The translations under genes and the position numbers were made by a program. A DNA stretch of 64,000 bases from positions 992,001-1,056,000 of the forward strand of contig JAMWBK010000004.1 in the NCBI GenBank assembly GCA_029953675.1, given 5' to 3'. The notes beneath the pieces are model-generated. The model made no database searches. It had not been told where the DNA came from and saw only the letters and a program-made list of their open reading frames with translations. Below are positions 4,477 to 35,900 of this stretch, one piece after another (positions within the stretch are counted from its first letter, which is position 1; each line of letters starts with the position of its first letter). The stretch comes from Rhodosorus marinus CCMP1338. Taxonomy: Eukaryota; Plantae; Rhodophyta.

Positions 4477-6513
4477 TATATACGAACGAACGAATGGTAT
4501 TTTTATTCTCCGCTTGGTCGTGGGGCTACCTATGACACCCTTGGCGCTTCCTCACACACGTTTGCGGCGCGCACAGGGGTACAACAGGGTGATCCCTTGT
4601 CCCCTTTCCTACATGCCTGTGGACTACAACTCGTCTTGCTTTGTCTTCGCTCCGAATTCCCGCAGGTTCGTACGGTTGCATACCACGACGACGTGTGCCT
4701 CCTGGGGCCCCCCGATACTCTAGCGCTCGCTTATGATCGTCTCCGCTCCTTGGCTTCGCGGGTTGACCTGGAGGTTAATCATCACAAATCGTTCTACTGG
4801 GGAGGTGTAGCTGCACAAGAGCAGCAGGTACCTGCGTCGTTCCAGGATATTTGGAGACCGGATGGTTTTGTCCACTTAGGCATCCCCTACGGGTCGCCGT
4901 CCTTCGTTGAAGGCGAGTTGCTGCAGCTCCTCGGTAAGCACAGACAGCTGGTTGCAGGGCTTCGACGGCTACCTCCGGGCTTTCTTCAGTGCTCGTTGTT
5001 GCTGTTTCGGTATTGTTGCAGTCAGCGGTTAACCTATTGGCTCAGCTCACTTCCAACTCATTGGGGCCGGTGGTTGGCCACTCGTGCGGATGCTGAAAGT
5101 TTCCGTGACCTGGGGTATTTTCTCGATGAAGAGCTGAGCGCTCTGCCGCGACCCACCTGTGATGTTGTGCGCGCCCAGGTAGGCCTCCCATTGCGATTGG
5201 GGGGACTGGGCCTCTGCAATCGTGTTGTGGTCCAACCTGCAGCCGCAGTAGGGGCCTGGGGAACCGCACTTCCCACTTTGAGCAGCTTGGGTATCTCGAA
5301 GTTCGGCAATTTGATGGCGAGCCTCTCGCGGGGTGTCTTGCTTCCCAGCGTACCGGAAAGCGCCCAAGACTTGTTTCTGGAGCTCCAAGCCGCCCTGAAT
5401 TCCTGTACTAGTCTCCCCGAAACCGTTCAACCCCGTCTTCCTGACTGGCGAGCTGTATTTGACCGCTCTCGAGGTTCCGCCCCGGGGATTCGTCCTGCGC
5501 CTGAATCTGTTCTAGGGGAGATTGACCCAGTGGTTGCCGCAGAAGAAGAAGTTCCAGTTGATCCTCCTGATGATTCCCAGCGCGCTGGGAGCCGAGCTCA
5601 AGCACGCACGGATGCGCTGCAAAATATCCTTTCTTGGGACTTGCACCGTGCTGCATATGGCCGACTCCTCGCGCAGATGGTCTCATCTTCTCGCGCTCGC
5701 GCCCGCCTACGTAGTCTTGGAGGGGTTCTTAGCTCTCAGTGGCTCATGACCGTACCAGCCTTTCCGCCACTCACACTGTCGGATTTCGAAGTGCGTACTT
5801 CACTGCGCTTATACCTCGGCTTACATCAGCCCCCTTGGCCGTACGAGATGGGTTCGTCGTGCCCTCTCTGCTCTCAGACTGAAGACAACGCAGATTTTGG
5901 CGCCCACCTGCTCGCTAGTTGCCCGGCGGTGAAAGGTGCTCGAACCCGCCGCCGTACACGGATCTTGAACCTGTTATACCGGGAACTTCGGCCTATAGTC
6001 CGGCAAGCCGGTCTGGAAATCGAACGTGAGAAACCTTTACCCGTCGCGGACTTTCAAAATGATGAACGCCGTGTAGCCGACCTGGTGATAACCTGTGACG
6101 ACAGCCGCCGTACCACATACGTTGATCTTGCTGTTCCTAAACCTCAAGCTAGTCGTTATCTCCCGGCTGCGGGGGAGCGCCGTGGCTCTGCCGCCGCCAG
6201 CATGAGACGCCGCAAAGAGATTAAATACGCAGGGGCTTTGTCTTCCCCTGGTGTTCGTGCTTCGGCACTAGCACATCGCTTGGTACCCCTGATCATTGAG
6301 TGCTTTGGGTTCATGGACTCTGTTGGTTCTCGCTGGCTTCGGGAGTTGTTCCGCGAACGCCCTGACCGTCTTCAATCGTTGTTTACCCGCTTAAGTTTCC
6401 TGCTGTGGCGCATGAACGCCGCTTTGATGTTGGAGGCGCGAGTACTTCGCCGCGCTTAGTCTTTTTTTCCCCTCGGGGTTTTTTTTTCAGCCTCCGATTA
6501 AACCATTCGTTCG
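4477..6513 (+). mobile_element. Family A CRE-like RLE non-LTR retrotransposon, 5'-truncated within RT, 11-bp TSD, inverted tail copy at the 5' junction
   Basis: TSD TATATATTTCA at 4466-4476 and 6514-6524. Tail (TTCG)2. T-rich 3'UTR with a CCCC-TC-GGGG hairpin. Confidence 0.9.
4504..6459 (+). CDS. Family A RT C-terminal half, CCHC knuckle and RLE (no true start; 5'-truncated)
   Basis: GVQQGDPLSP, YHDD, QVGLPLRLGGLG, CPLC-x11-H-x4-C, VADLVI..YVDLAVP..KEIKY, LVPLIIECFG. Confidence 0.9.
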   Translation, partial: YSPLGRGATYDTLGASSHTFAARTGVQQGDPLSPFLHACGLQLVLLCLRSEFPQVRTVAYHDDVCLLGPPDTLALAYDRLRSLASRVDLEVNHHKSFYWGGVAAQEQQVPASFQDIWRPDGFVHLGIPYGSPSFVEGELLQLLGKHRQLVAGLRRLPPGFLQCSLLLFRYCCSQRLTYWLSSLPTHWGRWLATRADAESFRDLGYFLDEELSALPRPTCDVVRAQVGLPLRLGGLGLCNRVVVQPAAAVGAWGTALPTLSSLGISKFGNLMASLSRGVLLPSVPESAQDLFLELQAALNSCTSLPETVQPRLPDWRAVFDRSRGSAPGIRPAPESVLGEIDPVVAAEEEVPVDPPDDSQRAGSRAQARTDALQNILSWDLHRAAYGRLLAQMVSSSRARARLRSLGGVLSSQWLMTVPAFPPLTLSDFEVRTSLRLYLGLHQPPWPYEMGSSCPLCSQTEDNADFGAHLLASCPAVKGARTRRRTRILNLLYRELRPIVRQAGLEIEREKPLPVADFQNDERRVADLVITCDDSRRTTYVDLAVPKPQASRYLPAAGERRGSAAASMRRRKEIKYAGALSSPGVRASALAHRLVPLIIECFGFMDSVGSRWLRELFRERPDRLQSLFTRLSFLLWRMNAALMLEARVLRRA

Positions 6514-7539: not shown

Positions 7540-9260
7540 CGTCCGGGTGGCGCGGAACGGAGTGATTAGGACGTTCCATCCCATTCGCGAGTGTCACGTT
7601 GGAGGACCTTTTGCCGGCAACGGACCGATCTGCCCGTTGGAGCTCATCTGCAAGAATCTGATCACCGGCACTCGACCATCATCCGTGGGACACAGTTTAC
7701 GGACGTTATCTTTGGCTTTGATGGACACCATAACATCCGAAGCCTGGGTAGTGACGATTTAATTAAAAGCAGTGACGGCAATATTAGAGTCTTCGGTGTG
7801 CGGCGATGAGAAGTTAGTGGGTAACGACAGGAACGACAACCTGTTAGCAGAGCACGGTAACGATCGGGTATTTGGCGGAGCTGACAAGGATTTCATCTCC
7901 GGGTTTGAAGGGAAGGACTTGCTCTACGGCGGCGATGGTATGGACCGAGTCGATGAACGTGGTGGAAAGGACGTCGTCAACGGTGCAAGCGGAATTGGCT
8001 TTTTTTCCATGGTGGAAGTGGGGCGGACTATATGCTCGGACTTCAAGGTGCTGATTTCATTGACGGGAATGCAGGCAATGACAAAATCAATGGGGGCATC
8101 GGAATTGATAAGATACACCGGTCGCAAGGGGACGATATCATCTTCAGGGAGTCAGGATCCGATGTCCTCTTCGGAGACAACGGCAACGATCGTATCTACA
8201 TCGGTGAAGGGGCTAATAAAGCACATGGTGGTGAAGGGGATGACTATATCACCGCTCCATCGGTTGAGAACCGGTTCTTTGGCGGCAATGGTCATGATAA
8301 GCTCATCGGAGGCGTCGATAGTAACAGCTTGGATGGGGGTGTCGGAGATGATCGGCTCGAGGGTAAGGACGCGGATGATAGCCCCGACGGAGGGGAGGAA
8401 AACAACGTGTTGATCGGTGCTGGTGGCGACGACAACTCTTTTGGATACGAAGGTGATGATGATCTGAGAGGTGGAGCAGGAGCTGATCACATGCTCGATT
8501 TTGAAGCAAACGACACTATGCCAGTTGGGGAGAAGGCCCGACAATATGACAGGAGGCCTTGGAAATGATGATATGAACGAGGGACGGGCCAATGATCTCG
8601 TGTTAGGAACGCAAGGGATAGACAAAATCATAACCGGGCAAGGTGACGACGAGGTACACGCCGGTAGGGGGGATGACGAAGTGGACGTAGGTTCAGGCGA
8701 CGATGCCATGTTCGGAGAGGCTGGCAATGATCAGGCGCCGGTTTGAACGAGTTGCATGGCGGCCTCGACAACGACGTTCTAGAGGGTGGTGAGGATGCAG
8801 ACACTATATTGGACGGACAGGAAAGGAACCCGTCTATGTCAACGGAGGGGATGATTTTTTGCTCGGTGGTACGGGTGATGACGCTATTCGAGCAGGCGAT
8901 GGCAATGCAAGGTTAACGGAGGTGAAGGTGAGGATGATATCGAAGGTGGGAATGGAAACGATAAGATGGAGGGGAAGGTCGGAGACGATGTTGTGAAGGG
9001 CAGTGATGGCAGGGACAACATCATTGAAGGACGCGAGCACGACGAGATAGAAGGGAATCGTGGAGAAGACCTTGTCCAAGATCTGAACCGGGACAATTCC
9101 TTAAGCGGCAAAAGGGAACGATACGATCACTGCGGGAGACGGCGATGACAGGATAAACGCGGGTCCAGGTAACGACAACATCACGTCCGTAAAGGGTTTT
9201 GATACGATAGATCCTGGCACGGGAACCGACATCGTTGACGTCAATCCAGGGGTTTGAAAC
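7540..9260 (+). pseudogene. Degraded RTX/hemolysin-type Ca-binding repeat protein; may extend upstream to about 6950
   Basis: More than 20 degenerate GGxGxDx(L/I) nonapeptides spread over several frames (GNAGNDKIN, GGNGHDKLI, GGVGDDRLE, GGAGADHML, GGLGNDDMN); several stops and frameshifts. Confidence 0.8.
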
Positions 9261-9570: not shown

Positions 9571-10240
9571 CCCACATGGACGTAGGATTTCTTCGAAAAT
9601 GAACTTCGCCACATTCTCCTTCATAGTTTCCGGCATTGCTCGCACGCAGACCATCGCGTCAACGAATCTACCGCCACGAAGATCCCTTGATTTCCGCTCG
9701 CGTGAGCCTTTCGAAACCTCCCGACAAAACCCGAATGGCACCGAGGGAAGAACGCTTGGCAGTAGTGGCGTAATCCGACGTATTGCTGCAATTCCGATGT
9801 CGAACATGGGAGGGGACGCGTAATTAGTTGCAATGAGTGGATGGATTTACTACTATAGCCTGAATCGCTGCGCAAGGCGTGGCAATGAATGTTCACTGCT
9901 TCTACATAAGACGCATCTTGTAAGAATAATACGGCACGAGTCTTGAGATTTGACAAGACGAGCGGGAATCTGTCAACCGTCCACTGGTCAGGTTCCGGAC
10001 GCGATGAGTGAGAAAGTACAATGCACAAGGCGAATATGATGGGGGATGACTCCTGCAGAATTTTGCCCCCGGATTTAGGCCACGTCTCCGGCCTATGTTT
10101 GTTCACTCTCGAGCTCATTAGTCTCGAGGAAGCCGACGGAAAGCCAGAATCTCCATCAGTCTACCCGAAATTCCCGAAATGCGTTGTTTCTGATATTGTC
10201 TTTGATTCTCCTAACCTTACCGAGCTCTGTCAGAGTCCTT
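9570..10240 (-). mobile_element. Ty3/gypsy integrase N-terminal remnant
   Basis: ELQQYVGLRHYCQA (HHCC-like) and CVRAMPETMKENVAKFIFEEIL (start of core); frameshifted. Confidence 0.4.
9837..9881 (-). mobile_element. Tail-only family B insertion (45 bp)
   Basis: Reverse complement is CACGCCTTGCGCAGCGATTCAGGCTATAGTAGTAAATCCATCCAC, flanked by GCAATGA at 9830-9836 and 9882-9888. Confidence 0.75.
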
Positions 10241-10445: not shown

Positions 10446-11843
10446 CTAGTTCCGGGCAACGAAAGTCGGGACTCGTTTTGGCTTTACGCCGATATTGGGC
10501 TGAGCGAAGCCCAGCTCGCATGCCGCTCTGTAGTTGACCCGTCTGAAGCTCGATTTCACTGTATACTGTTCTCCAAAGATGCCCTTGTACTTGAGCACGA
10601 GTCTGGCCGAATCAACTTCGACGTAATAGGGTCCGCCAGCGATCGGTTTGTACAGGTTGGAAATGGCAATTCCGTTGTTGTTAAAATACCAATCGAAGGT
10701 CTCCCCGTTGGGTTGGTTGGCGTACTCGATGTATCCTGTTCCGATCAACGCAGCTTGTGAGACAACCACTGTTCTGAACCTGAACTGGAAAGGGCATATC
10801 TTCTCCATATTCGTAGCTGGTGCCCAGAACTTGTTGATCCTGATTGTGTTCCTGTGTATCAGCGTGGGCATCCGGTAGCTTAGGCACAGGCTATCGTTGA
10901 ACTCGAAGAAGTCATGAAGTTGCAGGTTTCCAAGGATCCAGTTCTTTAGCACAGCTCCTATGGGATGGTCGTCCACGTCGTGCTCCTCAAGCTTCTGAAT
11001 GATCACGTGTTTGAGTTCGTCCATGATGAGCTCGTCGAGATCAACAGTAAGCAGATCCTGAACTGTTTTGCTCGTCGCATAGTCCATCATAATGCTCTCA
11101 ATTTCGTCCTTGATGAGCTTCTTGACGTCCACAAACTTTTCGATGATGTCCAGGAACGTATCCAGAATCCAAGAATCCAACGCCACCTCAAAGTCAACAA
11201 CGACATCCACCGGCACCAGTCTGACGGTCGGCGAGCTGTCCTTCGATTGAATGTCAAACTTGGCTTTGACATTGAGACCGTTGAAGTGGCCCTTTTTGTT
11301 TAGAAGGTTGATATTACACGGATTCTTTGTGATTTTGTGGTAGCATTCGACCTGGATCTCATTGCCTCTCTGTTCGAAATCAAGCTCCAACACAACGAGC
11401 ACACCACCTTGCGGGTTTTCCTCGAGATATGTTTTGATTCCCCAAGGTTGGGACACGATGTCCTTGATGTAGAGCCAGTAGCGCCTGTTGAGAATAGCCT
11501 TCTTGATGGGAGGAATGTCGAACGATATCGGATCGAGACCAGGGAGAACCACGTGAGAGGTCTGCTTTTCCCAGTTCTTCTTGGATTTGTTGTACGGCCC
11601 AAGGTTGTTGAGACTGATCTCTGATTGGCTGAGCAAACCGTTCAAAACGTCTATCACGGAGTCATTGGGCACGCAGAGGTAGTCATCGACGTATCCACCC
11701 TGTGTATTGGATCGGTGTAGTTTTCCAGGAGACAAAAAATCAACGAACTTGGTGTTGGCAAACTCAAGCGCACCACGGACCGAGCTTACAATCGCAACCA
11801 GGAGCACCACCACCACCGCTTTCGTGTATGCGTTTTTCTTCAT
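10446..11843 (-). CDS. Secreted protein, 465 aa, intronless; possible BPI/LBP (TULIP)-like domain plus a beta-rich C-terminal domain
   Basis: Start at MKKNAYTKAVVVVLLVAIVSSVRG (signal peptide) in a long uninterrupted ORF. Long beta strands followed by the amphipathic helix DSWILDTFLDIIEKFVDVKKLIKDEIESIM. The fold call is inference. Confidence 0.8.
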   Translation of the reverse strand: MKKNAYTKAVVVVLLVAIVSSVRGALEFANTKFVDFLSPGKLHRSNTQGGYVDDYLCVPNDSVIDVLNGLLSQSEISLNNLGPYNKSKKNWEKQTSHVVLPGLDPISFDIPPIKKAILNRRYWLYIKDIVSQPWGIKTYLEENPQGGVLVVLELDFEQRGNEIQVECYHKITKNPCNINLLNKKGHFNGLNVKAKFDIQSKDSSPTVRLVPVDVVVDFEVALDSWILDTFLDIIEKFVDVKKLIKDEIESIMMDYATSKTVQDLLTVDLDELIMDELKHVIIQKLEEHDVDDHPIGAVLKNWILGNLQLHDFFEFNDSLCLSYRMPTLIHRNTIRINKFWAPATNMEKICPFQFRFRTVVVSQAALIGTGYIEYANQPNGETFDWYFNNNGIAISNLYKPIAGGPYYVEVDSARLVLKYKGIFGEQYTVKSSFRRVNYRAACELGFAQPNIGVKPKRVPTFVARN

Positions 11844-13449
11844 CCTTGATGATATTCTCCTCTGTTGTTCTTGATGCCCTCGTCTATGAGGCCAGTCCCC
11901 CCACAACCAGCTCCGACTGGTACTTATAGTCGTCTTCTCAGCGTCAATAGAACGACCCAAGTTATGGCCAGAACGGTTGACGTATGACTGCCCTGAGAAC
12001 CGATCATCATAAAACTTTCCGAGAAGACCCTTAGGATCAAGGCAATGCCTATGACCGCGACAGTATTCAGCGCTCGATCAAGGCCGCATCGAGACCGAGA
12101 AGCAGACGCGCACAATAATTCCCTGTGCCAGGGCAATCTGCGGTATATTCTGATAGGTAACGGACCCTGGCAGCCAGATTGCCACGTACTATGGCGATAT
12201 TGTGAGCAGCAAAAGTCCCCCCTCCCAGACCAGAGGTCCCACTCGGTATACCCCGCACTCCAAAAATAGCTCATCGATGACAATATTCCTGATGAAATCC
12301 ATATCAATCTATGCGTATCCCAGCCCACTACATCGAACCGCCTGGGCAGCCATCTATCGATTACCCTCAAACCTTCCTTGAGCACAAAAGTGAACGAAAC
12401 TATGCCTGCGCCAGGCTTAGCACCACCCGATCCGCGGTAAGCAACCGTGACCAAAAAGCCAACCGTCTTATTATTTGCAAGCTGGCTGTCCACATGAATA
12501 TGAAAAAAAGGAAATATATAAAGACAAACTAAATTTTAATGAGATAACGAGTAGTATAAAAGTAGAACATCAGTGGAACGAAGTCTTTTATTTCGTAAAA
12601 ACAAAAGTTGTGTTTTTGAGTTTTAACCAATCATTAGTTTTAATAGATGATAAACAGTTTTAGAGTATTTTCATTCGTGTATAAGAAAAACTTAACGATC
12701 TTAACAGGCTAGTTGATATATGTCTTGTTCTATTATATGGAGCTCTTTCTAATTATAGAAGCTGTGGATAGCCCGTTCATTCAAACAGCCAATTAACAAT
12801 CTCTAATTGATTGGCTAGCATTGCGTCCCAACGAAATGGGACAAGCTCCGGGAAAGAGGCTTCTGAGTCGTCCAGAGTTGGGAAGCCCTAATAAACAATT
12901 CATTCAATTGCGGATGAAGGGCTTACAGGCAATTTCGGATTATCACTGACCTGTAGGTAGCTTGACCATCGCCATGGACGGTTTACGTTTGGTACGCCTT
13001 CTTTCTCCATGCGCCACCACGGACAACCGCGCTGTGTGGTCTTTTTCGGTTGTCTATTGCGCTCTGATGGAGGCGAAGGCACAAAGTCAGCTAGTTTAAC
13101 GTTCTATAGTAGCCAGGTCAAGGCCGTCCTAGTCGCCACAGCAGAGCGACTGGTTGACCGAGCAGGTGTCACAGCATATCTCCGACAAATGCTGACAAGC
13201 CTTAGGTACAGGTATACACCCTTACCCGTTGGCGACTGGCTTAATAGCTTTCCAGTATTACGAAAATATCTGTCGTCCATATCTCCGGTTCCTTCCAGTA
13301 CGGTCTTTTACAGGCAATCACCGCCGCCAACTGAAATGAATTGGTTTAACTGGTGCACAGGATCACAGCAGGATTAACCCAGAAACCCTCCATCACTGGT
13401 CAATCAGCTTCATACCACTGCTCTCAACGCATAAATTGTACTGTTGTAC

Positions 13450-13620: not shown

Positions 13621-13650
13621 GAATTTGTAACCTCTCAAATTCTCTATTCT

Positions 13651-13728
13651 GGGCTTTACCAGCATAGCCTGAAACGCTACGCAAGGCGTGAAAAGAAACT
13701 AAGAACTAGGGAGGGAAGCGTGCAAACC
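13651..13728 (-). mobile_element. Short family B 3'-end insertion (78 bp) with 7-bp TSD
   Basis: TSD CTATTCT at 13644-13650 and 13729-13735; carries the stop, 3' stem-loop and tail GGTAAAGCCC. Confidence 0.8.
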
Positions 13729-14589
13729 CTATTCTAACTATGAATACATCCTGGCAGGTGTCAGAAGTAGGTAATTAAAGAATCTTTTCACTTTCCATAA
13801 GTCAGCAGATGTGCAGCAAACCCGAAGGTTGCGAGGGTCAACGTACCTGGATTTACTACAACCATAGAACACGACGATGAGGAAGACTTGCAACGGAAGA
13901 GTGCAAGGGATTGCGCAGCTGGGTTTGCTACGACCGTGGAAACGTCTGGGGGAGAACCCCGACTACTGAAATGAACTGGGCAGGGAGAAAAAGAAAAGGA
14001 GCCATGTCTGCGATTATTATTGAATCAGGGGACCAAATAAGACACAATTAAAGAACCGCCATCGCGCGCGAGCAGGCAATAATATTCCCTGCGATAGAAG
14101 GGCGAAAACGCCTGCGTATTTCCTCGTAATCTATTTCTCATAGCTGTGCTTCCTCGCAGTTCTCAGTTCCTTGTAGAATTTCAATTGCTTCATAGAGGGG
14201 GGAAGAGGTAAGCCTGCCCGCCTGCGGGGCGTCGTCAATCTGAGTATTTCAACCAGGACTTTGCCTGGCCCAAGTCATGGACTAAAAAGAATGGTTCAAC
14301 AGTCGTGTGGATACTAGATCGACAATAGGAAACCGGCTGAAACCCGACACTGGCAGGTTGGGTCCCTTTATGAGGTACGCAGAGAGGTTGCAGAGAGCGC
14401 GCGCCCTGAACTAAGGCACCATTACAGCACCAGAGAGTGGGATTCACACAGTTGAGCACCAAATCATTAACCGTAATACCGAGCAACCCCACCGCTATCT
14501 AAGAATCCGACGACATCCATGGCTAAGCATGTAAGCAGATGGGTCAGGTGAGACTGCAAAGCCACAGCGGGGCCAGGTGCCTCCGATTG

Positions 14590-14695
14590 CACTGATCTCC
14601 TTTTGCTTCCGCAGACTACGAAAATGACGAACGACGAGTGGCTGACCTCGTGCTCACCTGTTAAGATAGCCACCGTACGACGCGAGTTGTAGGTT
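14590..14695 (+). mobile_element. Old family A RLE fragment, left part, split by the full-length family B insertion; right part is 19536-19870
   Basis: ADYENDERRVADLVLTC*DSHRTT continues after the insertion as VDLAVSNPDASRYLPAAGERRG. Confidence 0.75.
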
Positions 14696-17600
14696 CAACC
14701 TGTTTGAGTAGTCTGGGGTTGGGTATCGAGGCTATGCTAGTTGTCGAGGATTGGGGTTTTGTTTCTTTTTCGGTCGCGAGCGTGTTCGTTTACGGGAAGC
14801 GCTTCCTCTGGTACGCCTTCCCCTCGATTTTCCGCGGGGCGTCGTTTGCATTTGCAACTACTTCTGTCTTCCGGGTGGGTGAGTTGCGGGGCCTTTCCTA
14901 TTTGGGTTGGGTTTGGTCGATTATTCTCTCGGTGCGGTTTCATATTGGTGGTGCAACGTTTCCTTGGCGGATTCCCTCAGGATGGTAGGGATATCTCCGC
15001 ACTCGACGGAGCCTCCTCCCAAGGAGGCACTGCCAGGTGGGGGACTCCGTGTTCGCCTCAGCTGCGGCACGTTTTCTTCCGAGGTTGACTTGGAAGGCGC
15101 TTCTGGCACCCAGGCGCGTTCACTTATCTCCGCTGTCACCAGCCTGATCACGGCTGCGAGTGATCGTGGAGTGCTCCCTCAGCTCACCCAGAAGCTAGGT
15201 GGGCTGGAATCGGGATTGCTGGCCAGGTCAAATTCAAATTCGGACGAGAATTTGAATTGCCCCAGAGTGGCAGCGTTGGCTGAAGGCAGTCAACATCCGG
15301 TCAATCAACATGAACCTGTCCCGGGACAGGCGAGGGCTGTTGCTTCTGCGCGGGACAGTACGACGTTGGGGAGCGGCAGGCCGGGCCAAAACGCGCTTCA
15401 GCGCTCGGGGACTCGAGGCAATGGTGGTGGTGACTGTGCGGCAACCGGTGTGGAGGAGACTGCAGCTGTGGACTTCCCTCTCTTGGACCAGCCCTCAGGT
15501 GGTCACCAGCTCCCGGCTACTTCGGGGGCACGTGGTGGCCGCAAGGGGGCGCTTCGTACGCATCAGTCTTGCGGAAGGGCACCACTGCCACACGTACGGC
15601 GGCTATGCTCCGTTTCATACCATCTCGCGAGCCTCAGGATGGACCTGTGGAGACCACTCTCCAATTTCTGTGGGTGCGAAATGTCCGGCCCCAGACTACA
15701 CGAGGACAGGTTCCGTCTATGCGAGACTTCCGGGACACTTTTGCGGAATCGTTAGGGTGCAGCAGGGGTGATTTCTTCTTCGCAAACTATGAGGGCCGCG
15801 ATGTGCTGTTTTTGGTCTCCGCAACCGCCGCCAAGTACCTGGAGGCCTTGCTGGCGAAGCCTACCGAGCAGTGGCCTGAGAGCGCCCGGTGGCTGCGCTG
15901 CAACCCGCAGGTGGTTTTGCACTTCGATTTTGACCGTTTCTCGGGCAATTTCCTGTCTCCGGGAGAAACGGCAGGGCTCTCTGAGCATGAGAGCAGCGTG
16001 AAGGCGGCAGCGATCCATTGGCTACGGATTCAGCGCCTTGAGAGGATCTTGTTGGCGCGGTTCCGGTCGGGCCCTCGTCACCTGCGCATGGCGGTTTCCA
16101 GTTTCTTCGATCTGGAGAGGCGACTTGTGCTGACTTCGCGCTACAAGACAGAGCTGCAGCGGTTGGGGATTTTGGAGGGCTCTGCTTCCAGCACTACTTC
16201 CAGCGAGAGTGGTGAGGCAGGGGAGCAGACTGAGGGCATGGCGGTGGAGGACGCCCAGGTTACTTTGCTGAAGCCCGCGGGATCCGTTCCGCGAGCCTCG
16301 CGGAGTGGGAGGCTCACGACTTTGGTGCGGATAGGAGGTAAGAGAGCGAGGACCGACTCCCCGGGTCTAAGGGGAGAAGCACGATTAGCGCTCAGGCACG
16401 GCTGCGAGGTCGCAGCCTATGGATCTACAGTCTTATGTCCTGAAGGAGGGCGGAGACTGGGGCATTTGGCGTACGCGTTTTCGGAGTTGGCTCCGGCGGT
16501 GGATTTCTTTGGAAGGAGGCTCGCTTCCCTCCGTGGGGGCATTCCCCCAGTCGTCCTTCCTCGTGGAGACCTTCTAGTAGCTGGAACCATTCTCGATTTC
16601 ATCTTCACGAGCCTGGCTCGCAACATTCGGGACACAGTCATTTGGGTTTTTCTGGGGTCATGCCGCGCCTGATTCTGGCCCCCATTCACACATCGGAGCG
16701 CAGATGGCGAGTACGAGACCGACTGGCCCTGTTCTTGAAGGGAGACTTCGAAGTACTACAGCGCAGCTATTTGGCGTCGTCAGCACCATCCGCCCGTCGG
16801 ACTCGGCATGGCACAGTGTCGCCCGTGCCAGCTCGAGTACAGAAATTGGTAGCAGTGGGCGATTTAAGTCGAGCGGCGCGGGTTTTGGAGGGCCAGGCGC
16901 CTGTCCTCCCCTACGATGATAGTCTCGCCCAGACGGTGTCGTCTTTGTTCCCTGAGTCCGACGTGGATTTGTCCCCTGAATTCGAGGTATTCTTGGACCG
17001 TCCGGAGTTGGCCAGGTTTCGCATCGATCTGACGCTCAGTGAGTCTGACCTGGAGGATTTGCTTCGTACCTCGCGTCGGGGACGCTGTCCTGGACCCTCC
17101 GGACTAAGAACAGAGCTATTGCAGGCCCTGAGCCAGCCTGGCCAGAGCGCGCTTCTGAGGATCCTTAACAAGTTGTTCCAGGGCGTATCGGGTGCGTCCG
17201 CGCCATGGGAACATCTCCGGCAGGCACAGCTTTGCTTGCTCACGAAACCTGACCACCAGCCGGCCCACCCGCGTCTCCGGCCGATCGGGATGGTGGAGAG
17301 CCTACGGAAGTTAGCCGGGAGGTGGCTATGCCAGCGCCTTCGCCAGCGCGTCACAGCTTTTATGGCGCCCTTGCAAGTAGGGGTGGGATTTTCTGGGGGT
17401 TGCGAACTGATCACCCATGGGATCGAGCTAGAACGCGCCAGTAGGCCGGAGTGGGGAGTCTTGGTGGTTGATTTCCGGAACGCATTCAACAGCGTGTCGC
17501 GGACGCATGCGCTAGAGGTGCTCCGACGTGTGTTTCCGGAGGCGTGGCCGTTTCTATCGGGTATTTACGGAGGGGAGAGCCTCCCCTACTTGACAACGGA

Positions 17601-19535
17601 GGGCACTGTTTTTCAAGCACATACTGGCGTCCAACAAGGCGACCCTTGCGGACCTCTTCTTCATGCCTGTGCCCTACAGCTTGTACTTTTACGTCTTTCG
17701 ACTGAGGTCTCGGATCTTCGAATCTGCGCGTACCACGATGACGTAACATTGCTGGGCACCCCTGACACCCTGGCTAGGGGACTGACCGCGATCGAAGCGA
17801 TTGCACGTCGCGTCGGTTTGACTGTGGAAACAGAAAAATGTCGCTTTCTCCCCCCGAGGGACGTGTCGCTGAACTCTCTGCCACCCACTCTGCGACTAAT
17901 CAGCGAACGTGAAGGGTTCGAACACCACGGCGTCGGATTGGGGACTGACAACTTTGTCCAAGCATCCTGCGAGCGAGTTTTGGCACGGCACAAGCAACTC
18001 ACCGACGCCATTGAGCACCTACCCGACAGCATGCTGCAATCGGCCTGCTTGCTTTCCCGCTTTTGTGCCGGTCCCAGACTCAACTACTGGTTGCGCAGCC
18101 TGCCTCCAGCTTGGGGCTCGTGGATCGCGGCTAAAGCCGACGAAATGACCCTGCAACACTGGGGAACGCTCTTGGATGAGCCCCTCGATCTTGAAGCTGC
18201 TCCCGACAGGGACTTTATTCGTGCACAGATCGCTCTACCGTTGCGATTAGGGGATTCGGCGTCGCAGACCGTGGGCTGGTATGCTCGCCAGCGGCGGTTG
18301 CCTCCTGGGCTACCGCGCTGCGAACGTTGGTGACCTTCCGGATGCGAAGTGCCTGCCTCTTGGCTCGAGCTTTGACCAACGAGGATCCAGTGACCCTGCC
18401 GCCCCCGCTTTTGACAATTTATGATGGTCTTCAACACGCGTTCAGGAGGTGCAACGCCGTGCCGGACGCAAATCGGTCCCGCTTTCGTTCCTGGAGGGAG
18501 CTGTTATGGGGACGAGCTGAAGCGATTGAGGATTCTCCCCTCGACCGAGTTCTTGCCGATGACGGAGAGGCTAGCCCCGGGTCCCCTGTTGCAGACTACC
18601 CGGGTTTGAGCCGATTGTGGAGCTCCCGCACTGATGTGATTCAACATAGCCTCACCTGGGGCCAACACAGTGCCGCTCACACAGTCATGCTCAATTCTCC
18701 TCTCACGCCGCCTACCACTGCCGCTCGTCTCCGCGGCATGGGAGGCCACCTCTCGCACTTGTGGTTAACCACTCTACCGTCGTCATTGAGTCATCGTCTC
18801 GATGCTTTCCAGTTCCGTTCTGCCGCACGCATCTATCTCGGTTTGCCACAGGCTCCGTGGCACTCTAATCGGCCGTCTTTCTGTCAGGGATGTGAGAGCC
18901 GGATTGACGCTTGTGGCTACCACTTCCTGGGTTCCTGCGGACTGTTGCGAGGTCTCCGTACGAGGCGTCACACTCGCCTCAAGTACATCCTCAGCGAATC
19001 TTTGACTCGGATAGGGCATACGGTTGAGGTTGAGTCGGAACTGCCCAGATCCATCTCGGACTCTGCACCGCCCCGTTGTATAGCCGATCTCCTCGTCTCC
19101 GACGCTGCTGCCAGACGCTCAACATATGTGGACCTTGCGATTACCTGCCCCGTGGCCAGCGCCCACCTCACCGCAGCCGCCCGCCGCCGGGGGGCCGCGG
19201 CTTCAGCCCTTCGAAGAGTTAAGGAACGACGGTATGCTGAGAGCATGGCCAGTCTGCCTTGCGCTGAGGGTCGCTCTCACCGGTTCCAGCCATTCATTGT
19301 GCAAAGCTTTGGTCACGTCGATAAGTCGGGTTTAGAGTGGTTGCGGAAATGTTTTGCTGAGCATCCTACTGAATATTTGGCGCTCTTGAGGCGTTTAAGT
19401 GTCTCCCTTTGGCGATATTCCAGCGACATGCTTTCCGAGGCGCGCCATCGGCGCCTGGGGTTGCATGCTTCCCTCCCTAGTTATTAGTTCATCTTCACGC
19501 CTTGCGTAGCGCTTCAGGCTATGCTAGTAAAGTCC
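14696..19535 (+). mobile_element. Family B CRE-like RLE non-LTR retrotransposon, apparently full length (4.84 kb), 11-bp TSD
   Basis: TSD AGTTGTAGGTT at 14685-14695 and 19536-19546. The region from 14750 matches the start of the copy at 60745. 3' end is CTAGTAAAGTCC. Confidence 0.92.
14982..19487 (+). CDS. Family B polyprotein, about 1500 aa when three -1 frameshifts are bridged: RRM-like region, RT, CCHC, RLE
   Basis: Frames 14907, 15569, 16642 and 18327 join via 1-bp-short G runs at about 15545, 16655 and 18250; the 56-60 kb copy has one more G at each. Motifs RCPGPSGL, LRPIG, DFRNAFN, GVQQGDP, YHDD, CQGC..H..SC, RH, IADL..YVD..KERRY. Confidence 0.85.
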
Positions 19536-19870
19536 AGTTGTAGGTTGATCTTGCTGTTTCTAATCCTGACGCTAGTCGCTATTTGCCGGCTGCGGGAGAG
19601 CGCCGTGGATTTGCCGCTGCAAGTATGAAACGCCGCAAACAAGTGAAACATGCGGAGGCTTTGCCTTCCCCAGGCATTTGTACTTGGGCTCTAGCTCATC
19701 ACTTGGTAGCTCTGATCATTGAGTGCTCTGGGTCTATGGATTCTGTTGGTTCTCGTTGGCTTCGTGAGTTGTTCCGAGAACGCCCTGACCGTCTGTACTC
19801 GTTGTTTACGCGTGTAAGTTTCTTTTTGTGGCGTATGAAGGATGTTATTTTTTGATGTTGGAGGCGCGCG
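19536..19870 (+). mobile_element. Old family A RLE fragment, right part
   Basis: ASRYLPAAGERRGFAAASMKRRKQVKH..LVALIIECSGSMDSVGSRWLRELFRERPDRL. Confidence 0.8.
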
Positions 19871-20837: not shown

Positions 20838-20929
20838 ATCACTAAGTCCGACTTCTATAGAAACTCCCCGACAAAGCCCTGTCAAAATAAGGATCTTGAT
20901 TGGTTGTTGGCCTTCTCGATTGACCAATG

Positions 20930-22064
20930 GGAGTCTCACAGGTTCCAGCCTTTCATTGTTGGAAACCTTTGAGCATCTGGAAAATTCAAGCTTGGAATCG
21001 CTTGGTAAGCGTTTCACCGAACATCCTGAAAAATATCTGGTGCTCCTCCGCTGTTTGAGTATCGCATTCTGGCGGTATTCTAGCAACATGCTCGCCGAGG
21101 CGCCACCGTTGCTTGGGCTTACATGCTCTTCTTCCTAGCCCCTAGTTTCCTTTTAGGGTTTGCGTGGCGCGTCAGGCTATCCTAGTAAAACCACGCTTGT
21201 GGCTACCACTTCCTGGGTTCCTGCGGACTGTTGCGAGGTCTCCGTACGAGGCGTCACACTCGCCTCAAGTACATCCTCAGCGAATTTTTGACTCGGATAG
21301 GGCATACGGTTGAGGTTGAGTCGGAACTGCCCAGATCAATCTCGGACTCTGCACCGCCCCGTTGTATAGCCGATCTCCTCGTCTCTGACGCTGCTGCCAG
21401 ACGCTCAACATATGTGGACCTTGCGATTACCTGCCCCGTGGCCAGCGCCCACCTCACCGCAGCCGCCCGCCGCCGGGGGGCCGCGGCTTCAGCCCTTCGA
21501 AGAGTTAAGGAACGACGGTATGCTGAGAGCATGGCCAGTCTGCCTTGCGCTGAGGGTCGCTCTCACCGGTTCCAGCCATTCATTGTGCAAAGCTTTGGTC
21601 ACGTCGATAAGTCGGGTTTAGAGTGGTTGCGGAAATGTTTTGCTGAGCATCCTACTGAATACTTGGCGCTCTTGAGGCGTTTAAGTGTCTCCCTTTGGCG
21701 ATATTCCAGCGACATGCTTTCCGAGGCGCGCCATCGGCGCCTGGGGTTGCATACTTCCCTCCCTAGTTATTAGTTCATCTTCACGCCTTGCGTAGCGCTT
21801 AAGGCTATGCTAGTAAAGTCCAGTAAAACCACATGTGGATAAGTCGAGTTTAGAGTGGTTGCGGAAATATCTCGCTGAGCATCCTACTGAGTACTTGGTG
21901 CTTTTACGGCGTTTGAGTGTCGCCCTGTGGCGATATTCTAGCAGCATGCTTGCTGAGGCGCGCCTTCGGCGCCTGGGTTTGCACGCTTCCCTCCCTAGTT
22001 CTTAGTTCGTTTTCACGCCTTGCGTAGCGCTTCAGGCTATGCTAGTAAAGCCCAGTAAAACCAC
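20930..22064 (+). mobile_element. Head-to-tail stack of three 5'-truncated family B copies (about 20930-21183, 21195-21821, 21833-22053), each followed by AGTAAAACCAC
   Basis: The 11-mer is at 21184-21194, 21822-21832 and 22054-22064. The middle copy is near-identical to 18909-19535. Confidence 0.88.
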
Positions 22065-22151: not shown

Positions 22152-22905
22152 GTGGTTTTACTGGTTTTTACTGATGCGTTACGGCAAGGCGTAAAAGGAA
22201 ACCTGGCGCTAGAATAGCGCCAGAGAGCAACACTTAAACGGAGGAGGAGCACCAGACATTCTTCAGGATGTTCGGTAAAACATTTACGCAGCCGCTCCAA
22301 GCTAGACTTTTGCAGATGCCCAATGCTTTCCACAATGAAAGGCTGGAACCTGTGGGACCGGCCCTCTTCCCGGGGAAAACTGGCAATGCTCTCAGCGTAC
22401 CGTCGATCCTTCACGCGGCGAAGTACAGAAGCTGCTGCCTCCCCTGCAGAGAGCGGCAGAAGGGAGATAGGTACCGGACACGGGGCAAGTGACAGCGAGC
22501 TCCACATATGCTGAGCGTTTGACGGCTGCGTCCGATACCAGGAGATCTGCGATGCAACGAGGAGAGGTGGTTGCGGAGGGTGTACCAGGCAGTGCCGATT
22601 CCACCTCGACCGTGTAGCCAACTCCTGTCAAGTGCTCGCTCAGGATATATTTCAGAGACGAGTGTCTCTTGGTGCGATGACCTCGCAGCAGTCCACACGA
22701 GCCCAGAAAATGGTACCACATCAGTCGATACGGCTAGCACAACCTTGGCAGACGGAAGGGCGATTGGAAGACCAAGCGGCCCGTGGCAAACCCAGGTAGA
22801 TGTGTGGCGCGGTCCGGAACTGGAGGCGTTCAGGCGTTGGCCCGGTGATGAGGGCAGAGTAGTTAGCCATGAGTGGGATAGATGAGCTCCCATGCCCCCT
22901 TAGAC
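22152..22905 (-). mobile_element. Diverged family B 3' fragment, tail-to-tail with the stack
   Basis: HFLGSCGLLRGHRTKRH, CIADLLVSD, FQPFIVESIG; tail ends in AGTAAAACCAC (22152-22162 on the minus strand). Confidence 0.8.
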
Positions 22906-22926
22906 GAGCCCTCGATAGGTGCAGCG

Positions 22927-26420: not shown

Positions 26421-26722
26421 CATTAATTTATAGCGCATCTGCTAACAGAAAATTGTTGAGAGTTCCTTAATTAAACAAATTTATTCCTATATCACATATC
26501 AAAAATAAAATAAAAACTGTTTCTATTTCAATTATACCATAGATAGAACGTATTTAGTTGATAAAGGAACGGTATCATATTTTTATTTTGAATATATTTA
26601 TTATTATGCTTTCGAAAGGCTTGCGCCAGGATGCGCGGTCCGAAGAGAGTACTAAGGCAACTTCTGGGGGTCTGGAGCCTGGGGAGGGAGCAGGGCTGGA
26701 AAGGGGGAGGGGGTGGGGGAAG

Positions 26723-27664
26723 ATGGGGAAGGGTTGGACTGCTGACGACATTCCCGATCTCGACGGGAAAGTTGCGATTGTGACTGGATCGAACCATGGA
26801 ATTGGGAGAGAGATTGCGAAAAGACTTGCGGAGCACAATGCGACGACTGTGATGGCATGTAGAACGGCTCAGAAGGCTGAAATAGCGAAACAGGAGTTGC
26901 TGGAGGAGATAGGAGAGGAGAAGCATCTTGTGGTGTTGACTTTGGACGTTTCCTCGCTTGAATCTATTAGAAATTTTTCAAGAGAGTTCTCGTCCAAGTA
27001 CAAGCGGTTGGACGTACTGATGGAGAACGCCGGTCAGCTGACGTTTGGTCCGAGACAGGAGAGTGTAGACGGACTCGAGCTGCAGCTTGCGACCAACCAC
27101 GTGGGTCAGTTTGCGCTTGCCACTCACCTAATGTCGATGCTCACGAAGACGGAAGGGAGCCGCCTTGTCACACAAAGTAGCTCTGCCAGCTGGATAGGCA
27201 AGTTTGATTGGGATAACCTGCAGGGAGAGAAGACGTATAGCACCTGGAGCCAATATGCCATGACCAGGCTGGCCAATGTAGCTTTTGCAAAGGAGCTCAA
27301 CAGCAGACTCGAGGCATCTGGCAAGAGTTTCCCGACTGCTTATGCAGTCCATCCGGGATTCGTAATGAAGGAACTTGAACCGGGAGCCAGGCAGGGAATG
27401 TTGCAGAAGATCGGCTCTGCAGTTGTTTATCCGCTAGCCGGAACTTTGGAAACGGCCGCCAGGCCAGCCCTGTACGCATGTACAGCACCAGATATAACTC
27501 CCGGAGCCTTTTACGGACCCCAAGGCCCCATACCGATAATCAGCGCCATGAATGGTCAATATCCTGGAGAAAATTATTCTAATAAGATCGTTTTGGACGC
27601 GGACCAGAGGAGCAAGCTTTGGGAAGTCTCCGAGCAGCTTTGCAAAGCACAGTTGAAGATATAA
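26723..27664 (+). CDS. Short-chain dehydrogenase/reductase, retinol-dehydrogenase/WWOX-like, 313 aa
   Basis: Start MGKGWTADDIPDLDGKVAIV; TGSNHGIG, ENAG, NHVGQF, QSSSAS, YAMTR (YxxxK with Arg), VHPG. Confidence 0.9.
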   Translation: MGKGWTADDIPDLDGKVAIVTGSNHGIGREIAKRLAEHNATTVMACRTAQKAEIAKQELLEEIGEEKHLVVLTLDVSSLESIRNFSREFSSKYKRLDVLMENAGQLTFGPRQESVDGLELQLATNHVGQFALATHLMSMLTKTEGSRLVTQSSSASWIGKFDWDNLQGEKTYSTWSQYAMTRLANVAFAKELNSRLEASGKSFPTAYAVHPGFVMKELEPGARQGMLQKIGSAVVYPLAGTLETAARPALYACTAPDITPGAFYGPQGPIPIISAMNGQYPGENYSNKIVLDADQRSKLWEVSEQLCKAQLKI

Positions 27665-31811: not shown

Positions 31812-32330
31812 ATGACTGAATGATTTTTTTAATCGGAGACTGAAAGGAAAACCCCGGGAAAGAAAAGACTACAAGCGGCGAAGATCGGGTGCCACCAACC
31901 TCAAAGCAGCGTTCACACGCCACAACAACAAATTTAAACGGGTAAACAACGAGGACAGGCTGTCAGGGAGTTCGCGGAACATTTCCCGAAGCCAACGAGA
32001 ACCAACGGGATGCATAAACCCAAAGCACTCGATGATCAGAGGTACCAGGCGATGAGCTAGAGCCGAAGCACGAATGCCTGGGAAATAAATAGCCGCTGCA
32101 TATTTGACCTGTTTCCGGCGTCCCACCTCATACTTGCGGCGGCAAATCCACGGCGCGCTCTCCCGCAGCCGGCGAATAACGACTAGCCTGAGGATTAGGA
32201 ACTGCAAGATCAACGTACAACGTACGTCGTACGGCAGCTATCGTCACAAGTTACCACGTGGTCAGACATCTTCGTTCGTCATCTTGGAAGTCTGCGACTG
32301 GCAGGCGTTTCTCACGTTCAATTTGAAGAC
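31812..32330 (-). mobile_element. Family A 3' fragment
   Basis: LVPLIIECFGFMHPVGSRWLREMFRE; 3'UTR CTCCGATTAAA with a TTCA-type tail abutting AGTAAAACCA (31799-31808). Confidence 0.8.
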
Positions 32331-33399: not shown

Positions 33400-34130
33400 A
33401 GCGCAAAGATTTGATGCCCCCAACATCAAATCAGCTTTCATACGCCACAACAGGAAACTCAAACAGGTTAAGAACGAGGAGAGCCGGCCAGGGCGCTCGC
33501 GGAAAAAACGCCACAGTTTGTGGTTGCAAATAAATATTTGCAACCACAAACTGTGGCGCTAACGAAGACCAAGACAAATGGGGAATGTAAGGAGCTTCCT
33601 CAATGGGGTAGCAAACTAGACTCTAAGGGAAAACTATTGTTTGGAGACGAATCGCGTATCATCGCATTGGCAGCTGACGTTGCATTAGCGCACGAATCCA
33701 AATTACTTAATGACCAAAGGCACCAGCCGATGTACTAAAGCCGAAGCGCGAATTTCTGGGGTAGACAAACCCCCCTCGTATTTCACAGGTTGAGAGCGCC
33801 TATGGTGGCAGCATTGGCATCAAGGTGCTCCTCCGCCGCCGTCAGATAACGGTTATCCGGGGGTCTGGGTACAACAAGATCTACGTACGCCTTGCGACGA
33901 CCATGTTCGCAAGTGCAAGCGCAGTTATCAGATACTAACTACTCTGAGAGCACTAAAATACCAAAGACGCATGTAATGCGCTTCAAAGCCCATGGCGGCG
34001 TTCATGCGCCATAGCACGAAGCTCAGAGCCCTTTTCAGACCGGAGAGTGTATCCTGGCACTCACGGAGGCATTCTTTGAGCCAAACCACTCCCCTACCGT
34101 CCAGAAACCGAACGACTCAAATAGCAAACG
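33400..34130 (-). mobile_element. Heavily degraded family A-like RLE region
   Basis: RRKAYVDLVVP..RYL, ASALVHRLVPLVI, LSFLLWRMKADLML. Confidence 0.6.
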
Positions 34131-34139
34131 GGACTAGAC

Positions 34140-35900
34140 AATGCGCACCCTCCAGATTTCAGGTCTAGTCGACGACAACGTGCGGGACACGATGTGGCAG
34201 GCAGTGGTCTCCGGACGACTGACGGTATCCTCCAGCAACGGCAACTTGTGGTAGAGTATTCTCACGATATTGTTTCTCAGCTCCGCTCCACGTTTTCCCG
34301 CGGAAGACTCTCCGTGGGTCTCGTCTTTGACGCGGAGATGGAGGCGTCCCAACCAGCCTGCCAGGCTGGTTGGGACGTGTGAGGGTGAACAGTTGGTGGT
34401 TACCTCGGATGCGGTGCGAGAGGTGGCCCAGTCTGCCCTCCGAAGGGTCGTTCTCCTGGGCACTCGGGGTTGCGTGTGGAGTATCGAACGAATGGTTTAA
34501 TCGGAGGCTGAAACAAAAAACCCCGAGGGGAAAAAAAGACTAAGTGCGGCGAAGAACTCGCGCCTCCAACATCAAAGCGGCATTCATGCGCCACAGCAGG
34601 AAACTTAAGCGGGTAAACAACGATTGAAGACGGTCAGGGCGTTCGCGGAACAACTCCCGAAGCCAGCGAGAACCAACAGAGTCCATGAACCCAAAGCACT
34701 CAATGATCACGGGTACCAAGCGATGTGCTAGTGCCGAAGCACGAACACCAGGGGAAGACAAAGCCCCTGCGTATTTGATCTCTTTGCGGCATCTCATACT
34801 GGCGGCGGCAGATCCACGGCGCTCCCCCGCAGCCGGGAGATAACGACTAGCTTGAGGATTAGGAACAGCAAGATCAACGTATGTGGTACGGGGGCTGTCG
34901 TCACAGGTGATCACCAGGTCGGCTACACGGCGTTCATCATTTTGAAAGTCCGCGACGGGTAAAGTTTTCTCACGTTCGATTTCCAGACGGGCTTGCCGGA
35001 CTATAGGCCGAAGTTCCCGGTATAACAGGTTCAAGATCCGTGTATGGCGGCGGGTTCGGGCACCTTTCACCGCCAGTATCACCGCCTTTTGGATGAGGAC
35101 AGTATGAAAGCGACAACGCAGTGCTGGAGGGATCGTCAATGGCGATCCTTTTTGTGATCGCATATGCTTTTTACTGGGGCGAACGCAGCTATATTTTGCT
35201 CTCCAAGTCGAGTCATACTGCTTCGATTCCTACCATTCGCCCTATTGGCATGGTGGAAATGGTCCGGAAACTGGCCGCCAGTTGGCCGGTCAAGGTTTTG
35301 TTCCCCAAAATCCTGCTGTTTCTTTAGACACACGCAGTTGAGCGTGGGTTATCGCGGTGGTTGCTAGCTGTTGTTACCCCTTTCTTGCTCGGAAATGACC
35401 TACTTCCCGGATTACAGGTAATTATACCTAGACTTCGGGAAGGAATTTAATCGTCTCTCCTGCCGGCCATCATGCATGTGGTACATCAGGTCCCTGTAGC
35501 TTTTCCATTTTTTTGTCGTGTGTACTCTTTGCTGGGCCATGGGCCGATCTATGAAATCCATGGCCCCTCCTCGCACTCCTTTGGGCGCGGGCTGGGGTTC
35601 AACAGGGTGACCGCTTGCCCCGCTCTTGCACGCCCGTCGAAATCAGGTCGTTTTGCTAGCCTGCATTCCGAGTTCCGCACAGTGAGATTTGCCACGATGT
35701 CTGCCTCCTGCTCCCCCCTTCCCCCCGGATGCTCTCACGGCGGCGTACGATCGTCTTCTCACAATGACACTACCGAACATTCCGGACTAGTTCGGAGACT
35801 GGCAAAAACCACCACCACCAGGTATGGGCAGGCCACAAAAGGTACACAAGCGGTAAGAAGGTACCCCGTAGCCTTTATCCCAGAGTAACGTAACCCCAGT
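34140..35900 (+). mobile_element. Degraded CRE-like RT region interrupted by a family A copy
   Basis: KGRSPGHSGLRVEYHRLL (reads through when the insert is removed), IRPIGMVEMVRKLA, VGYRGGC, LDFGKEFN, GVQQGD, CHDVCLL. Confidence 0.7.
34486..35074 (-). mobile_element. Young family A 3' fragment with 6-bp TSD
   Basis: AGTATC at 34480-34485 and 35075-35080; near-identical to 5925-6513. Confidence 0.88.

Follow-up and report, generated by a model that had tools for sequence, protein, structure and literature searches.

We analysed a 64,000-nt stretch of DNA from the red alga Rhodosorus marinus CCMP1338 (assembly GCA_029953675.1, contig JAMWBK010000004.1, forward-strand positions 992,001–1,056,000; hereafter the window, with positions counted from its first nucleotide). 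The window carries a non-LTR retrotransposon (one without long terminal repeats), copy A, which from its domain content is of the restriction-like endonuclease (RLE) type, the group holding R2. Sequence comparisons favour two genes, the open reading frames (ORFs) ORF1 and ORF2, rather than a single 1500-aa ORF, and judging by its broken frames copy A as assembled cannot make either protein. We consider it likely, with a probability of about 70%, that the breaks in the reading frames are genuine mutations and that copy A was inactivated recently. Copy A is the youngest and the sole 5′-complete copy within the window, and the element probably represents a red algal family not previously described.

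The assignment to the RLE-type non-LTR retrotransposons is based on a reverse transcriptase (RT), a Cys-His motif and a PD-(D/E)XK nuclease, on a profile match to R2, and on the lack of an apurinic/apyrimidinic endonuclease (APE) domain and of long terminal repeats. The RT was recognised on the plus strand as Pfam RVT_1 (E = 7.6e-16), and its best solved relatives are R2 and LINE-1 ORF2p. An ORF2 family profile (alignment A2) combining 18 homologues with the conceptual ORF2 matched the R2 structures 9nl3 and 9dou from the RT through the RLE over ~710 positions (E = 1e-51); LINE-1 ORF2p matched over the RT alone (~1e-21 to 1e-22). Pfam domain searches detected no APE domain (Exo_endo_phos) in the copy A proteins, and long terminal repeats were looked for at copy A and not found. 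ORF2 retains every invariant alignment column, namely RLRPIG, DFRNAFN, QQGDP and HDD in the RT as well as those of the CCHC motif and the RLE. The nuclease region of copy A reads C-x2-C-x9-H-x4-C-x9-RHT-x19-E-x15-IAD-x14-D, followed by K..RY; motif definitions for the R2 nuclease were taken from PMC4838377 and the CRE consensus used below from PMC12857005. The original prediction, made from the sequence of the window alone, had called the element an RLE retrotransposon with all catalytic motifs. Both claims were borne out, the first by the R2 profile match through the RLE without an APE domain and the second by the retention of every RT and RLE catalytic residue.

The closest relative of ORF2 is a protein (P0001) with 79% amino acid identity, encoded on a transcript contig (L001, 77% nucleotide identity) from an R. 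marinus sample of MMETSP, and a relative of the element, one carrying a deletion, is thereby transcribed in R. marinus. Both ORF2 searches and the cluster look-ups returned solely unnamed or ‘hypothetical’ proteins, with matches in marine metagenomes, a dinoflagellate, a diplonemid, a sponge, an octopus and insects. As these relatives are unnamed or ‘hypothetical,’ we assigned no clade. Since the closest relatives are unnamed and, except for the one transcript at 79%, reach at most 38% amino acid identity, the element may be an undescribed family, and the earlier suggestion of a candidate new RLE family may hold. Two metagenome-contig scans for further copies gave zero matches, and the transcript already known from R. 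marinus was likewise missed by them. Searches of the literature turned up no description of RLE-type long interspersed nuclear elements (LINEs) in red algae.

The features of the element and its surroundings are listed below, where copy B is the sister copy and family 2 is a second, related RLE-type LINE:

14610–14684, plus strand: left part of the interrupted family-2 RLE-type LINE, older and 5′-truncated
14685–14695, plus strand: left copy of the target-site duplication (TSD) AGTTGTAGGTT, a perfect 11-bp direct repeat
14696–19535, plus strand: copy A, RLE-type LINE of 4.84 kb, bracketed by the TSD copies
14696–14981, plus strand: 5′ untranslated region (UTR), upstream of the ORF1 ATG
14982–15544, plus strand: ORF1 N-terminal part, frame 0, 849-nt open frame, low-complexity
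15545–15549, plus strand: first frame break, G5 against G6 in copy B, ORF1 passing from frame 0 to frame 2
15545–16357, plus strand: ORF1 conserved part, frame 2, with a codon-usage signal and a ratio of nonsynonymous to synonymous substitution rates (dN/dS) between copies A and B of 0.34
16359–16393, plus strand: three 1-nt deficits relative to copy B (C4 at 16359–62, G4 at 16371–74, C/T at ~16392)
16386–16418, plus strand: probable ORF1 stop TAG (16386–88) and 30-nt spacer before ORF2, read with the bases of copy B
16419–19487, plus strand: ORF2, ~1023 codons, in frames 0, 2, 1 and 0, stop TAG at 19485–87
16522–16530, plus strand: frame break at ~16525, one base short relative to L001, ORF2 passing from frame 0 to frame 2
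16654–16657, plus strand: frame break, G4 against G5 in copy B and L001, ORF2 passing from frame 2 to frame 1
17272–17850, plus strand: RT core with RLRPIG, VVDFRNAFN, GVQQGDP and AYHDDV (Pfam RVT_1, invariant columns)
18250–18253, plus strand: frame break, G4 against G5 in copy B, ORF2 passing from frame 1 to frame 0
18882–19235, plus strand: CCHC motif and RLE, aligning to the R2 RLE in 9nl3 and 9dou
19488–19535, plus strand: 3′ UTR ending in ...TAGCGCTTCAGGCTATGCTAGTAAAGTCC(AGT), without poly(A)
19536–19546, plus strand: right TSD copy AGTTGTAGGTT, second copy of the 11-bp repeat
19547–19868, plus strand: right part of the interrupted family-2 LINE, with the RLE C-terminus and the 3′ end
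21197–21833, plus strand: 5′-truncated daughter, middle member of a three-fragment array
56129–60693, minus strand: sister copy B, 97% identical to copy A

As read from these frames, ORF1 would encode a lineage-specific protein of ~470 aa that ends probably at TAG 16386. The ORF1 of copy B terminates at the equivalent of TAG 16386–88, 30 nt ahead of the ORF2 start. The N-terminal third of ORF1 is poorly constrained, with an A–B dN/dS of 2.7 and neutral-rate evolution between the copies. Two relatives (P0185, P0177) align to the last ~45 residues of this N-terminal part and run on into the conserved part. The conserved part contains an SYASVLRKG motif, a beta-alpha-beta-beta-alpha-beta core and a helical hairpin, and has eight homologues among 1.84 billion representative proteins; the contig that carries the nearest distinct family has no ORF1 homologue. 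An AlphaFold (AF2) model of ORF1 made from the alignment had a predicted local distance difference test score (pLDDT) of ~75–84 in the core, and a single-sequence model was poor. A PDB fold search with the ORF1 model gave no significant match (best Foldseek E = 0.06), and the top probabilities were for RNA-recognition motif (RRM)-type RNA-binding domains. The modelled core is possibly RRM-like, and for this reason ORF1 may bind the element RNA.

The length of ORF2, ~1023 aa, fits that of related proteins (960–1080 aa). L001 encodes MDLQSYV... as a single ORF across 16419–17483, which places the start at ATG 16419 in frame 0. Over the same interval, the differences between copy A and L001 fall at third codon positions in 12 of 19 cases in the frame 0 segment, 27 of 45 in the frame 2 segment and 107 of 186 in the frame 1 segment. 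Upstream of the RT, Pfam and pattern scans detected no C2H2/CCHC pattern, zinc finger, Myb or protease domain.

The original prediction had instead described one ORF of about 1500 aa from ATG 14982. Three added bases do open a frame of 1502 codons, but two ORFs are favoured, and the single-ORF reading leaves ~55 codons (16359–16525) outside the conserved frame. It is also quite improbable that ORF1 and ORF2 are made as one ~1500-aa polyprotein, fused directly or by readthrough of TAG 16386. A fusion would agree with frame 2 of copy A being open over 15569–16672 and coinciding with the conserved ORF2 frame after ~16525, and with the ORF1 frame of copy B being that of the ORF2 body, with the TAG between them. 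It would also agree with the ~16525 shift being found in both copies, yet with an A–B ORF2 dN/dS below 1, and with a related family (P0205) that has a single long ORF of 1666 aa. The N-terminal region of P0205, with CCHH-like motifs, is however unrelated to ORF1. Furthermore, it is in frame 0, and not in the fused frame, that the first 36 codons of ORF2 (ATG 16419 onward) show conservation with R. marinus and third-position bias, and three relatives (P0188, P0197, P0027) begin ~50–100 aa before the LP(K/R)L.LAP motif, like ORF2 from 16419.

In ORF1 the frame is lost at the 15545 run, with probable further breaks at 16359 and 16371; in ORF2 it is lost at ~16525, 16654 and 18250. Across 15545–49 the ORF1 relatives P0177 and P0185 continue uninterrupted (...DFPVL...GPSYIATLRKG...), and P0001/L001 read through 16654–57 as one ORF. 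At the last of the G runs, the alignments of ~15 homologues follow frame 1 as far as 18252 and then continue in frame 0, and one more base at 18250–53 would bring back the conserved LP.R.GG(L/F)G motif. L001 shares the extra base of copy B at ~16392. Relative to L001, the third-position bias moves from frame 0 into frame 2 and then into frame 1, which reveals a further 1-base deficit at ~16525. This break is common to copies A and B, lies outside any G run and cuts ATG 16419 from the rest of ORF2. In total, copies A and B differ by 13 indels in the coding region. The three short G runs pointed out in the original prediction are each a true frame break, 1 nt shorter than in copy B, but they are not the sole interruptions, as the ~16525 break and the deficits at 16359–16393 show. 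The description of the copy as ‘probably intact’ therefore fails, with at least four and probably six frame breaks, one of them common to a clearly dead sister.

The sister copy B is truncated at its 5′ end, or rearranged, at the site that corresponds to 14938. Two stop codons, deletions of 5 nt and 34 nt, and several 1-nt indels show that it is dead. Between copies A and B, dN/dS is 0.34–0.50 in the conserved part of ORF1 and in ORF2. Lineage-specific substitutions per 1074 nt amount to ~5 in copy A and ~13 in copy B, so that copy A is nearest to the A/B ancestor. The near-identical truncated daughters that had been predicted (21195–21821) were confirmed, as the sequence at 21193–21824 is 99.05% identical to copy A over 632 bp (A 18907–19538) with no gaps. 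The family was recently active and under purifying selection.

Real mutations are favoured because the host genes used as a control were clean, because the ~16525 break is shared with copy B and falls outside the G runs, and because copy B has unambiguous lesions. The control comprised three unique genes (3.6 kb) with 15 G/C runs of at least 4, and zero frameshifts were found in them. Several observations weigh against this reading. Five of the deficits in copy A are single bases missing from G or C runs of 4–5, copy A has no in-frame stop codon in ~1500 codons, and its ~6 indels against ~22 lineage-specific substitutions are a high proportion for neutral decay. These deficits, the open frames and the indel ratio fit long-read homopolymer under-calling. 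The host-gene control is weak in that short-read polishing leaves errors in repeats, not in unique genes, and the break shared with copy B could be a context-specific systematic error. As to the description of the element, the fold assignment of ORF1 is not significant at E = 0.06, the end of ORF1 is read from copy B only, with no outgroup spanning 16359–16374, and the true 5′ end of the element is taken from copy A only.

These points lead to the alternative that copy A is intact in the real genome and is an active master copy, its breaks being homopolymer or context under-calls. Copy A is 1 nt short of copy B at five G or C runs and its conserved frames are free of nonsense codons, it is the copy nearest to the A/B ancestor with a 99%-identical daughter, and its family is under purifying selection. 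The one published Rhodosorus (R. marinus) nuclear genome was produced from Nanopore reads with short-read polishing by Pilon, and homopolymer errors in repeats survive such a design (PMC10250338). A Nanopore origin of this window is, however, an assumption. Six or seven errors per 4.8 kb would be needed, against zero in 3.6 kb of unique genes, and the ~16525 break, which is not in a G run, would have to be an error common to an otherwise clearly dead copy B. The daughter, moreover, has no length differences relative to copy A over 632 bp. We find an intact copy A possible but somewhat unlikely, and recent inactivation by real mutations is the explanation that we prefer.

R2, which is specific for 28S rDNA, is among the closest known systems. 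Its structures (9nl3, 9dou, 8gh6) have the same order of RT, linker, CCHC motif and PD-(D/E)XK nuclease, and the nuclease motifs RH, E, D, D and K..(K/R)Y of R2 are also found in copy A (PMC4838377). As in copy A, R2 insertions have a short TSD and no poly(A), and target-primed reverse transcription is presumed. The identity is, however, ~25–30%, copy A lacks the N-terminal zinc fingers described for R2 (PMC4838377) as well as a Myb domain and has a separate ORF1, and R2 inserts at a fixed site in 28S rDNA whereas the target of copy A is another LINE. The R2 clade is excluded by this architecture and target.

Elements of the CRE clade (CRE1/2, SLACS, CZAR, Cnl1, MoTeR, FoTeR) have a CCHC...RH...E...D...D layout near that of copy A. 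SLACS and CZAR have two ORFs, a layout that the element would share, and both the telomeric elements of this clade and the present element form head-to-tail arrays. The published consensus for the CRE nuclease region is C[x1-3]C[x7-8]H[x3-4]C[x9-10]RHD/N..E..R/KPD.x12-14.D/E (PMC12857005). The C-terminal CCHC motif and RLE of copy A agree with this CRE/SLACS consensus in order and in most spacings, but the C-to-H spacing is 9 rather than 7–8, and RHT and IAD are found in place of RHD/N and R/KPD. Several CRE-related FoTeR proteins carry N-terminal zinc fingers (PMC12857005), and copy A has no N-terminal C2H2 motif. No CRE-clade protein was among the matches of either ORF2 search, and scans of the window showed neither a spliced-leader gene nor telomere repeats nor any other RNA gene. 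On these sequence comparisons, membership of the CRE clade (CRE1/2, SLACS, CZAR, Cnl1, MoTeR), and with it the ‘CRE-like’ label of the original prediction, is undecided and weakly disfavoured, and we regard it as unlikely.

The NeSL/Utopia elements belong to the same RLE supergroup, as do the HERO and R4 clades. NeSL and Utopia elements have one to three N-terminal zinc fingers, some with an Ulp1 protease, and target spliced-leader or U2 genes (PMC4640811). Copy A lacks these zinc fingers and the protease, and there are no snRNA genes in the window. The HERO clade includes families that are not site-specific (PMC4640811), and such families fit the varied flanks of the copy A family. Unnamed RLE-type LINE proteins of marine eukaryotes (P0002, P0003/P0205, P0010–P0051, and matches in Polarella, Diplonema and Geodia) are the closest sequences found, with 25–38% identity over RT and RLE. 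They share GVQQGDPLGP, LP.R.GGLG and RPAD...D with ORF2, have no ORF1 homologue and are in some cases single long ORFs. Among the distant ORF2 relatives the N-terminal modules differ, with three CCHH-like motifs in P0205, UCH or OTU deubiquitinase-type protease modules in P0244 and P0246 and a PHD module in P0260. From these sequences, the N-terminal module of this LINE group appears to be exchangeable.

The 11-bp repeat at the ends of copy A is a real TSD since four empty paralogous sites span the junction. When the flanks were joined with a single repeat copy, they matched these uninterrupted paralogues (31891–32296, 34559–34954, 6045–6440 and 41331–41726) across the junction with 78–81% identity, and each contains AGTTGTAGGTT once. 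The 3′ ‘AGT’ of the right repeat may belong to the element or represent priming microhomology. As it is possibly element sequence, we give the TSD length as 8–11 bp, and the 11-bp TSD of the original prediction is upheld in this sense.

By sequence comparison, copy A inserted into the 3′ part, coding for the RLE, of a family-2 LINE that is older than copy A, related to it and 5′-truncated. Copy A interrupts the ...TTYVDLAV codons of this family-2 copy (14610–14695 and 19547–19868). Family 2 is also represented at 4495–6441, 40864–41802, 34485–35074 (minus strand) and 31828–32330 (minus strand). In the copy at 4495–6441, an open frame of 620 codons covers the RLE and the C-terminal half of the RT, with 38% amino acid identity to ORF2. 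Two family-2 copies are 97–98% identical, suggesting that family 2 was recently active too. The family-2 target reads CCACATACG, which agrees with the CCAC terminus of the element, and the family-2 site motif is CCACATACGTT.

The first 50 nt of copy A (14696–14745) were found in copy A alone; a second 5′ fragment (60741–61244) is homologous from 14746 on. At the 3′ end, copy A lacks the AAAACCAC terminus that other copies carry, and nine other element fragments finish at ...GCTAGTAAAGTCCAGT, frequently followed by AAAACCAC. A 22-nt motif, TAGCGCTTCAGGCTATGCTAGT, terminates the 3′ UTR of every copy (19507–19528 in copy A). A degenerate copy of it is found at 16386–16404, exactly in the spacer between the ORF1 stop and the ORF2 start, and 13 nt of it recur at 14729–14741, 34 nt from the 5′ end of the element. 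The R. marinus transcript contig L001 also opens with this motif (L001 1–20). The motif may be a protein-binding or template-switch signal.

A head-to-tail array is located at 20925–22064 and consists of three 3′ fragments (20925–21196, 21197–21833 and 21834–22064), which are ~60–75%, 99% and 88% similar to copy A and thus of differing ages. Each member finishes with ...CTAGTAAA(GTCCAGTAAA)ACCAC, and the next begins directly after the ...AAAACCAC terminus. This suggests template jumping during target-primed reverse transcription, or re-insertion at 3′ ends. Scrambled 5′ fragments lie head to head beside the 5′ end of copy B (60694–61575), at 60741–61244 (plus strand), 61244–61399 (minus strand) and 61397–61575 (plus strand).

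Site specificity of the element is unproven from the sequences at hand. It seems doubtful to us that the element targets a defined site in the RLE-coding 3′ part of family 2 together with its own 3′ ends. In favour of such a site, copy A lies where a family-2 copy encodes ...TTYVDLAV, and the sister copy B is followed by family-2 sequence that is oriented alike and roughly collinear. The three head-to-tail copies that each begin directly after ...AAAACCAC and the fit between the family-2 target CCACATACG and the CCAC terminus of the element are likewise consistent with a preferred site. However, the first ~95 nt of the 3′ flank of copy B have no significant similarity to family 2, and a search for an insertion of copy B at the family-2 site of copy A did not demonstrate one. 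Furthermore, four of the six family-2 sites are empty and the flanks of other 3′ fragments are unrelated. In a window so filled with transposon debris, nested hits are expected by chance or relaxed selection. Rfam and tRNA scans of the whole window were empty, with no rRNA, snRNA or other RNA family, and telomere-type repeats and a spliced-leader gene were absent within the single window examined.

By analogy to R2, insertion would proceed by target-primed reverse transcription, in which the ORF2 protein would nick the target DNA. The element RNA would pair through its 3′ end (...CCAGT AAAACCAC) with a few target bases, AGT in the case of copy A, and the nick would prime cDNA synthesis. A second nick 8–11 bp off would yield the duplication observed. 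Partial copying, template jumps or 3′-end re-insertion may then give rise to the many 5′-truncated copies and the head-to-tail array. It is very unlikely, in our estimation, that the breaks are artefactual and the element is a live two-ORF RLE-type LINE with a new RRM-like ORF1, homing to the nuclease region of family 2 and to its own 3′ ends. If this were true, it would represent a self-targeting ‘safe-harbour’ strategy and a new mode of target recognition for an R2-like insertion enzyme without the usual N-terminal DNA-binding domains.

Further RLE-type LINE fragments with 33–85% amino acid similarity are found in the window at 22208–22909 (minus strand), 33946–34146 (minus strand), 35196–35561 and 42706–43193. 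Others are located at 61879–62184, 13649–13729 and 9842–9889 (all minus strand), making the window a transposon nest. The window also contains intron-free ORFs of bacterial appearance, namely a sulfatase-PKD gene (44893–46578) and two short-chain dehydrogenases and an RTX-repeat ORF at 26558–27664, 47501–48355 (minus strand) and 7772–8413. The sulfatase-PKD gene has 83% amino acid identity to R. marinus and 85.6% nucleotide identity to an MMETSP transcript from the sample of L001. By these matches the window is nuclear DNA of a stylonematophycean red alga at or near R. marinus. A bacterial source, suggested at first by the intron-free sulfatase, dehydrogenase and RTX ORFs, was dismissed on the sulfatase match; exact look-ups of two host proteins gave no record. 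After Rhodosorus paralogues its next-best matches are bacterial, and an old horizontal transfer into a red alga may be the cause. Three long open frames of 259–504 aa, at 10446–11960 (minus strand), 36118–37029 (minus strand) and 53216–53995, match no Pfam family and do not resemble ORF2.

RLE-type LINEs are the source group for the R2-based gene-insertion tools now under development. The value of the present element as an enzyme source is not immediate unless copy A proves intact or site-specific. The element serves as a repeat model for the annotation of Rhodosorus genomes. A two-ORF RLE-type LINE in a stylonematophycean alga is a data point on the evolution of the RLE group, its features being an ORF2 without zinc-finger/Myb domains, a lineage-specific ORF1 and a relative that is transcribed in Rhodosorus marinus.

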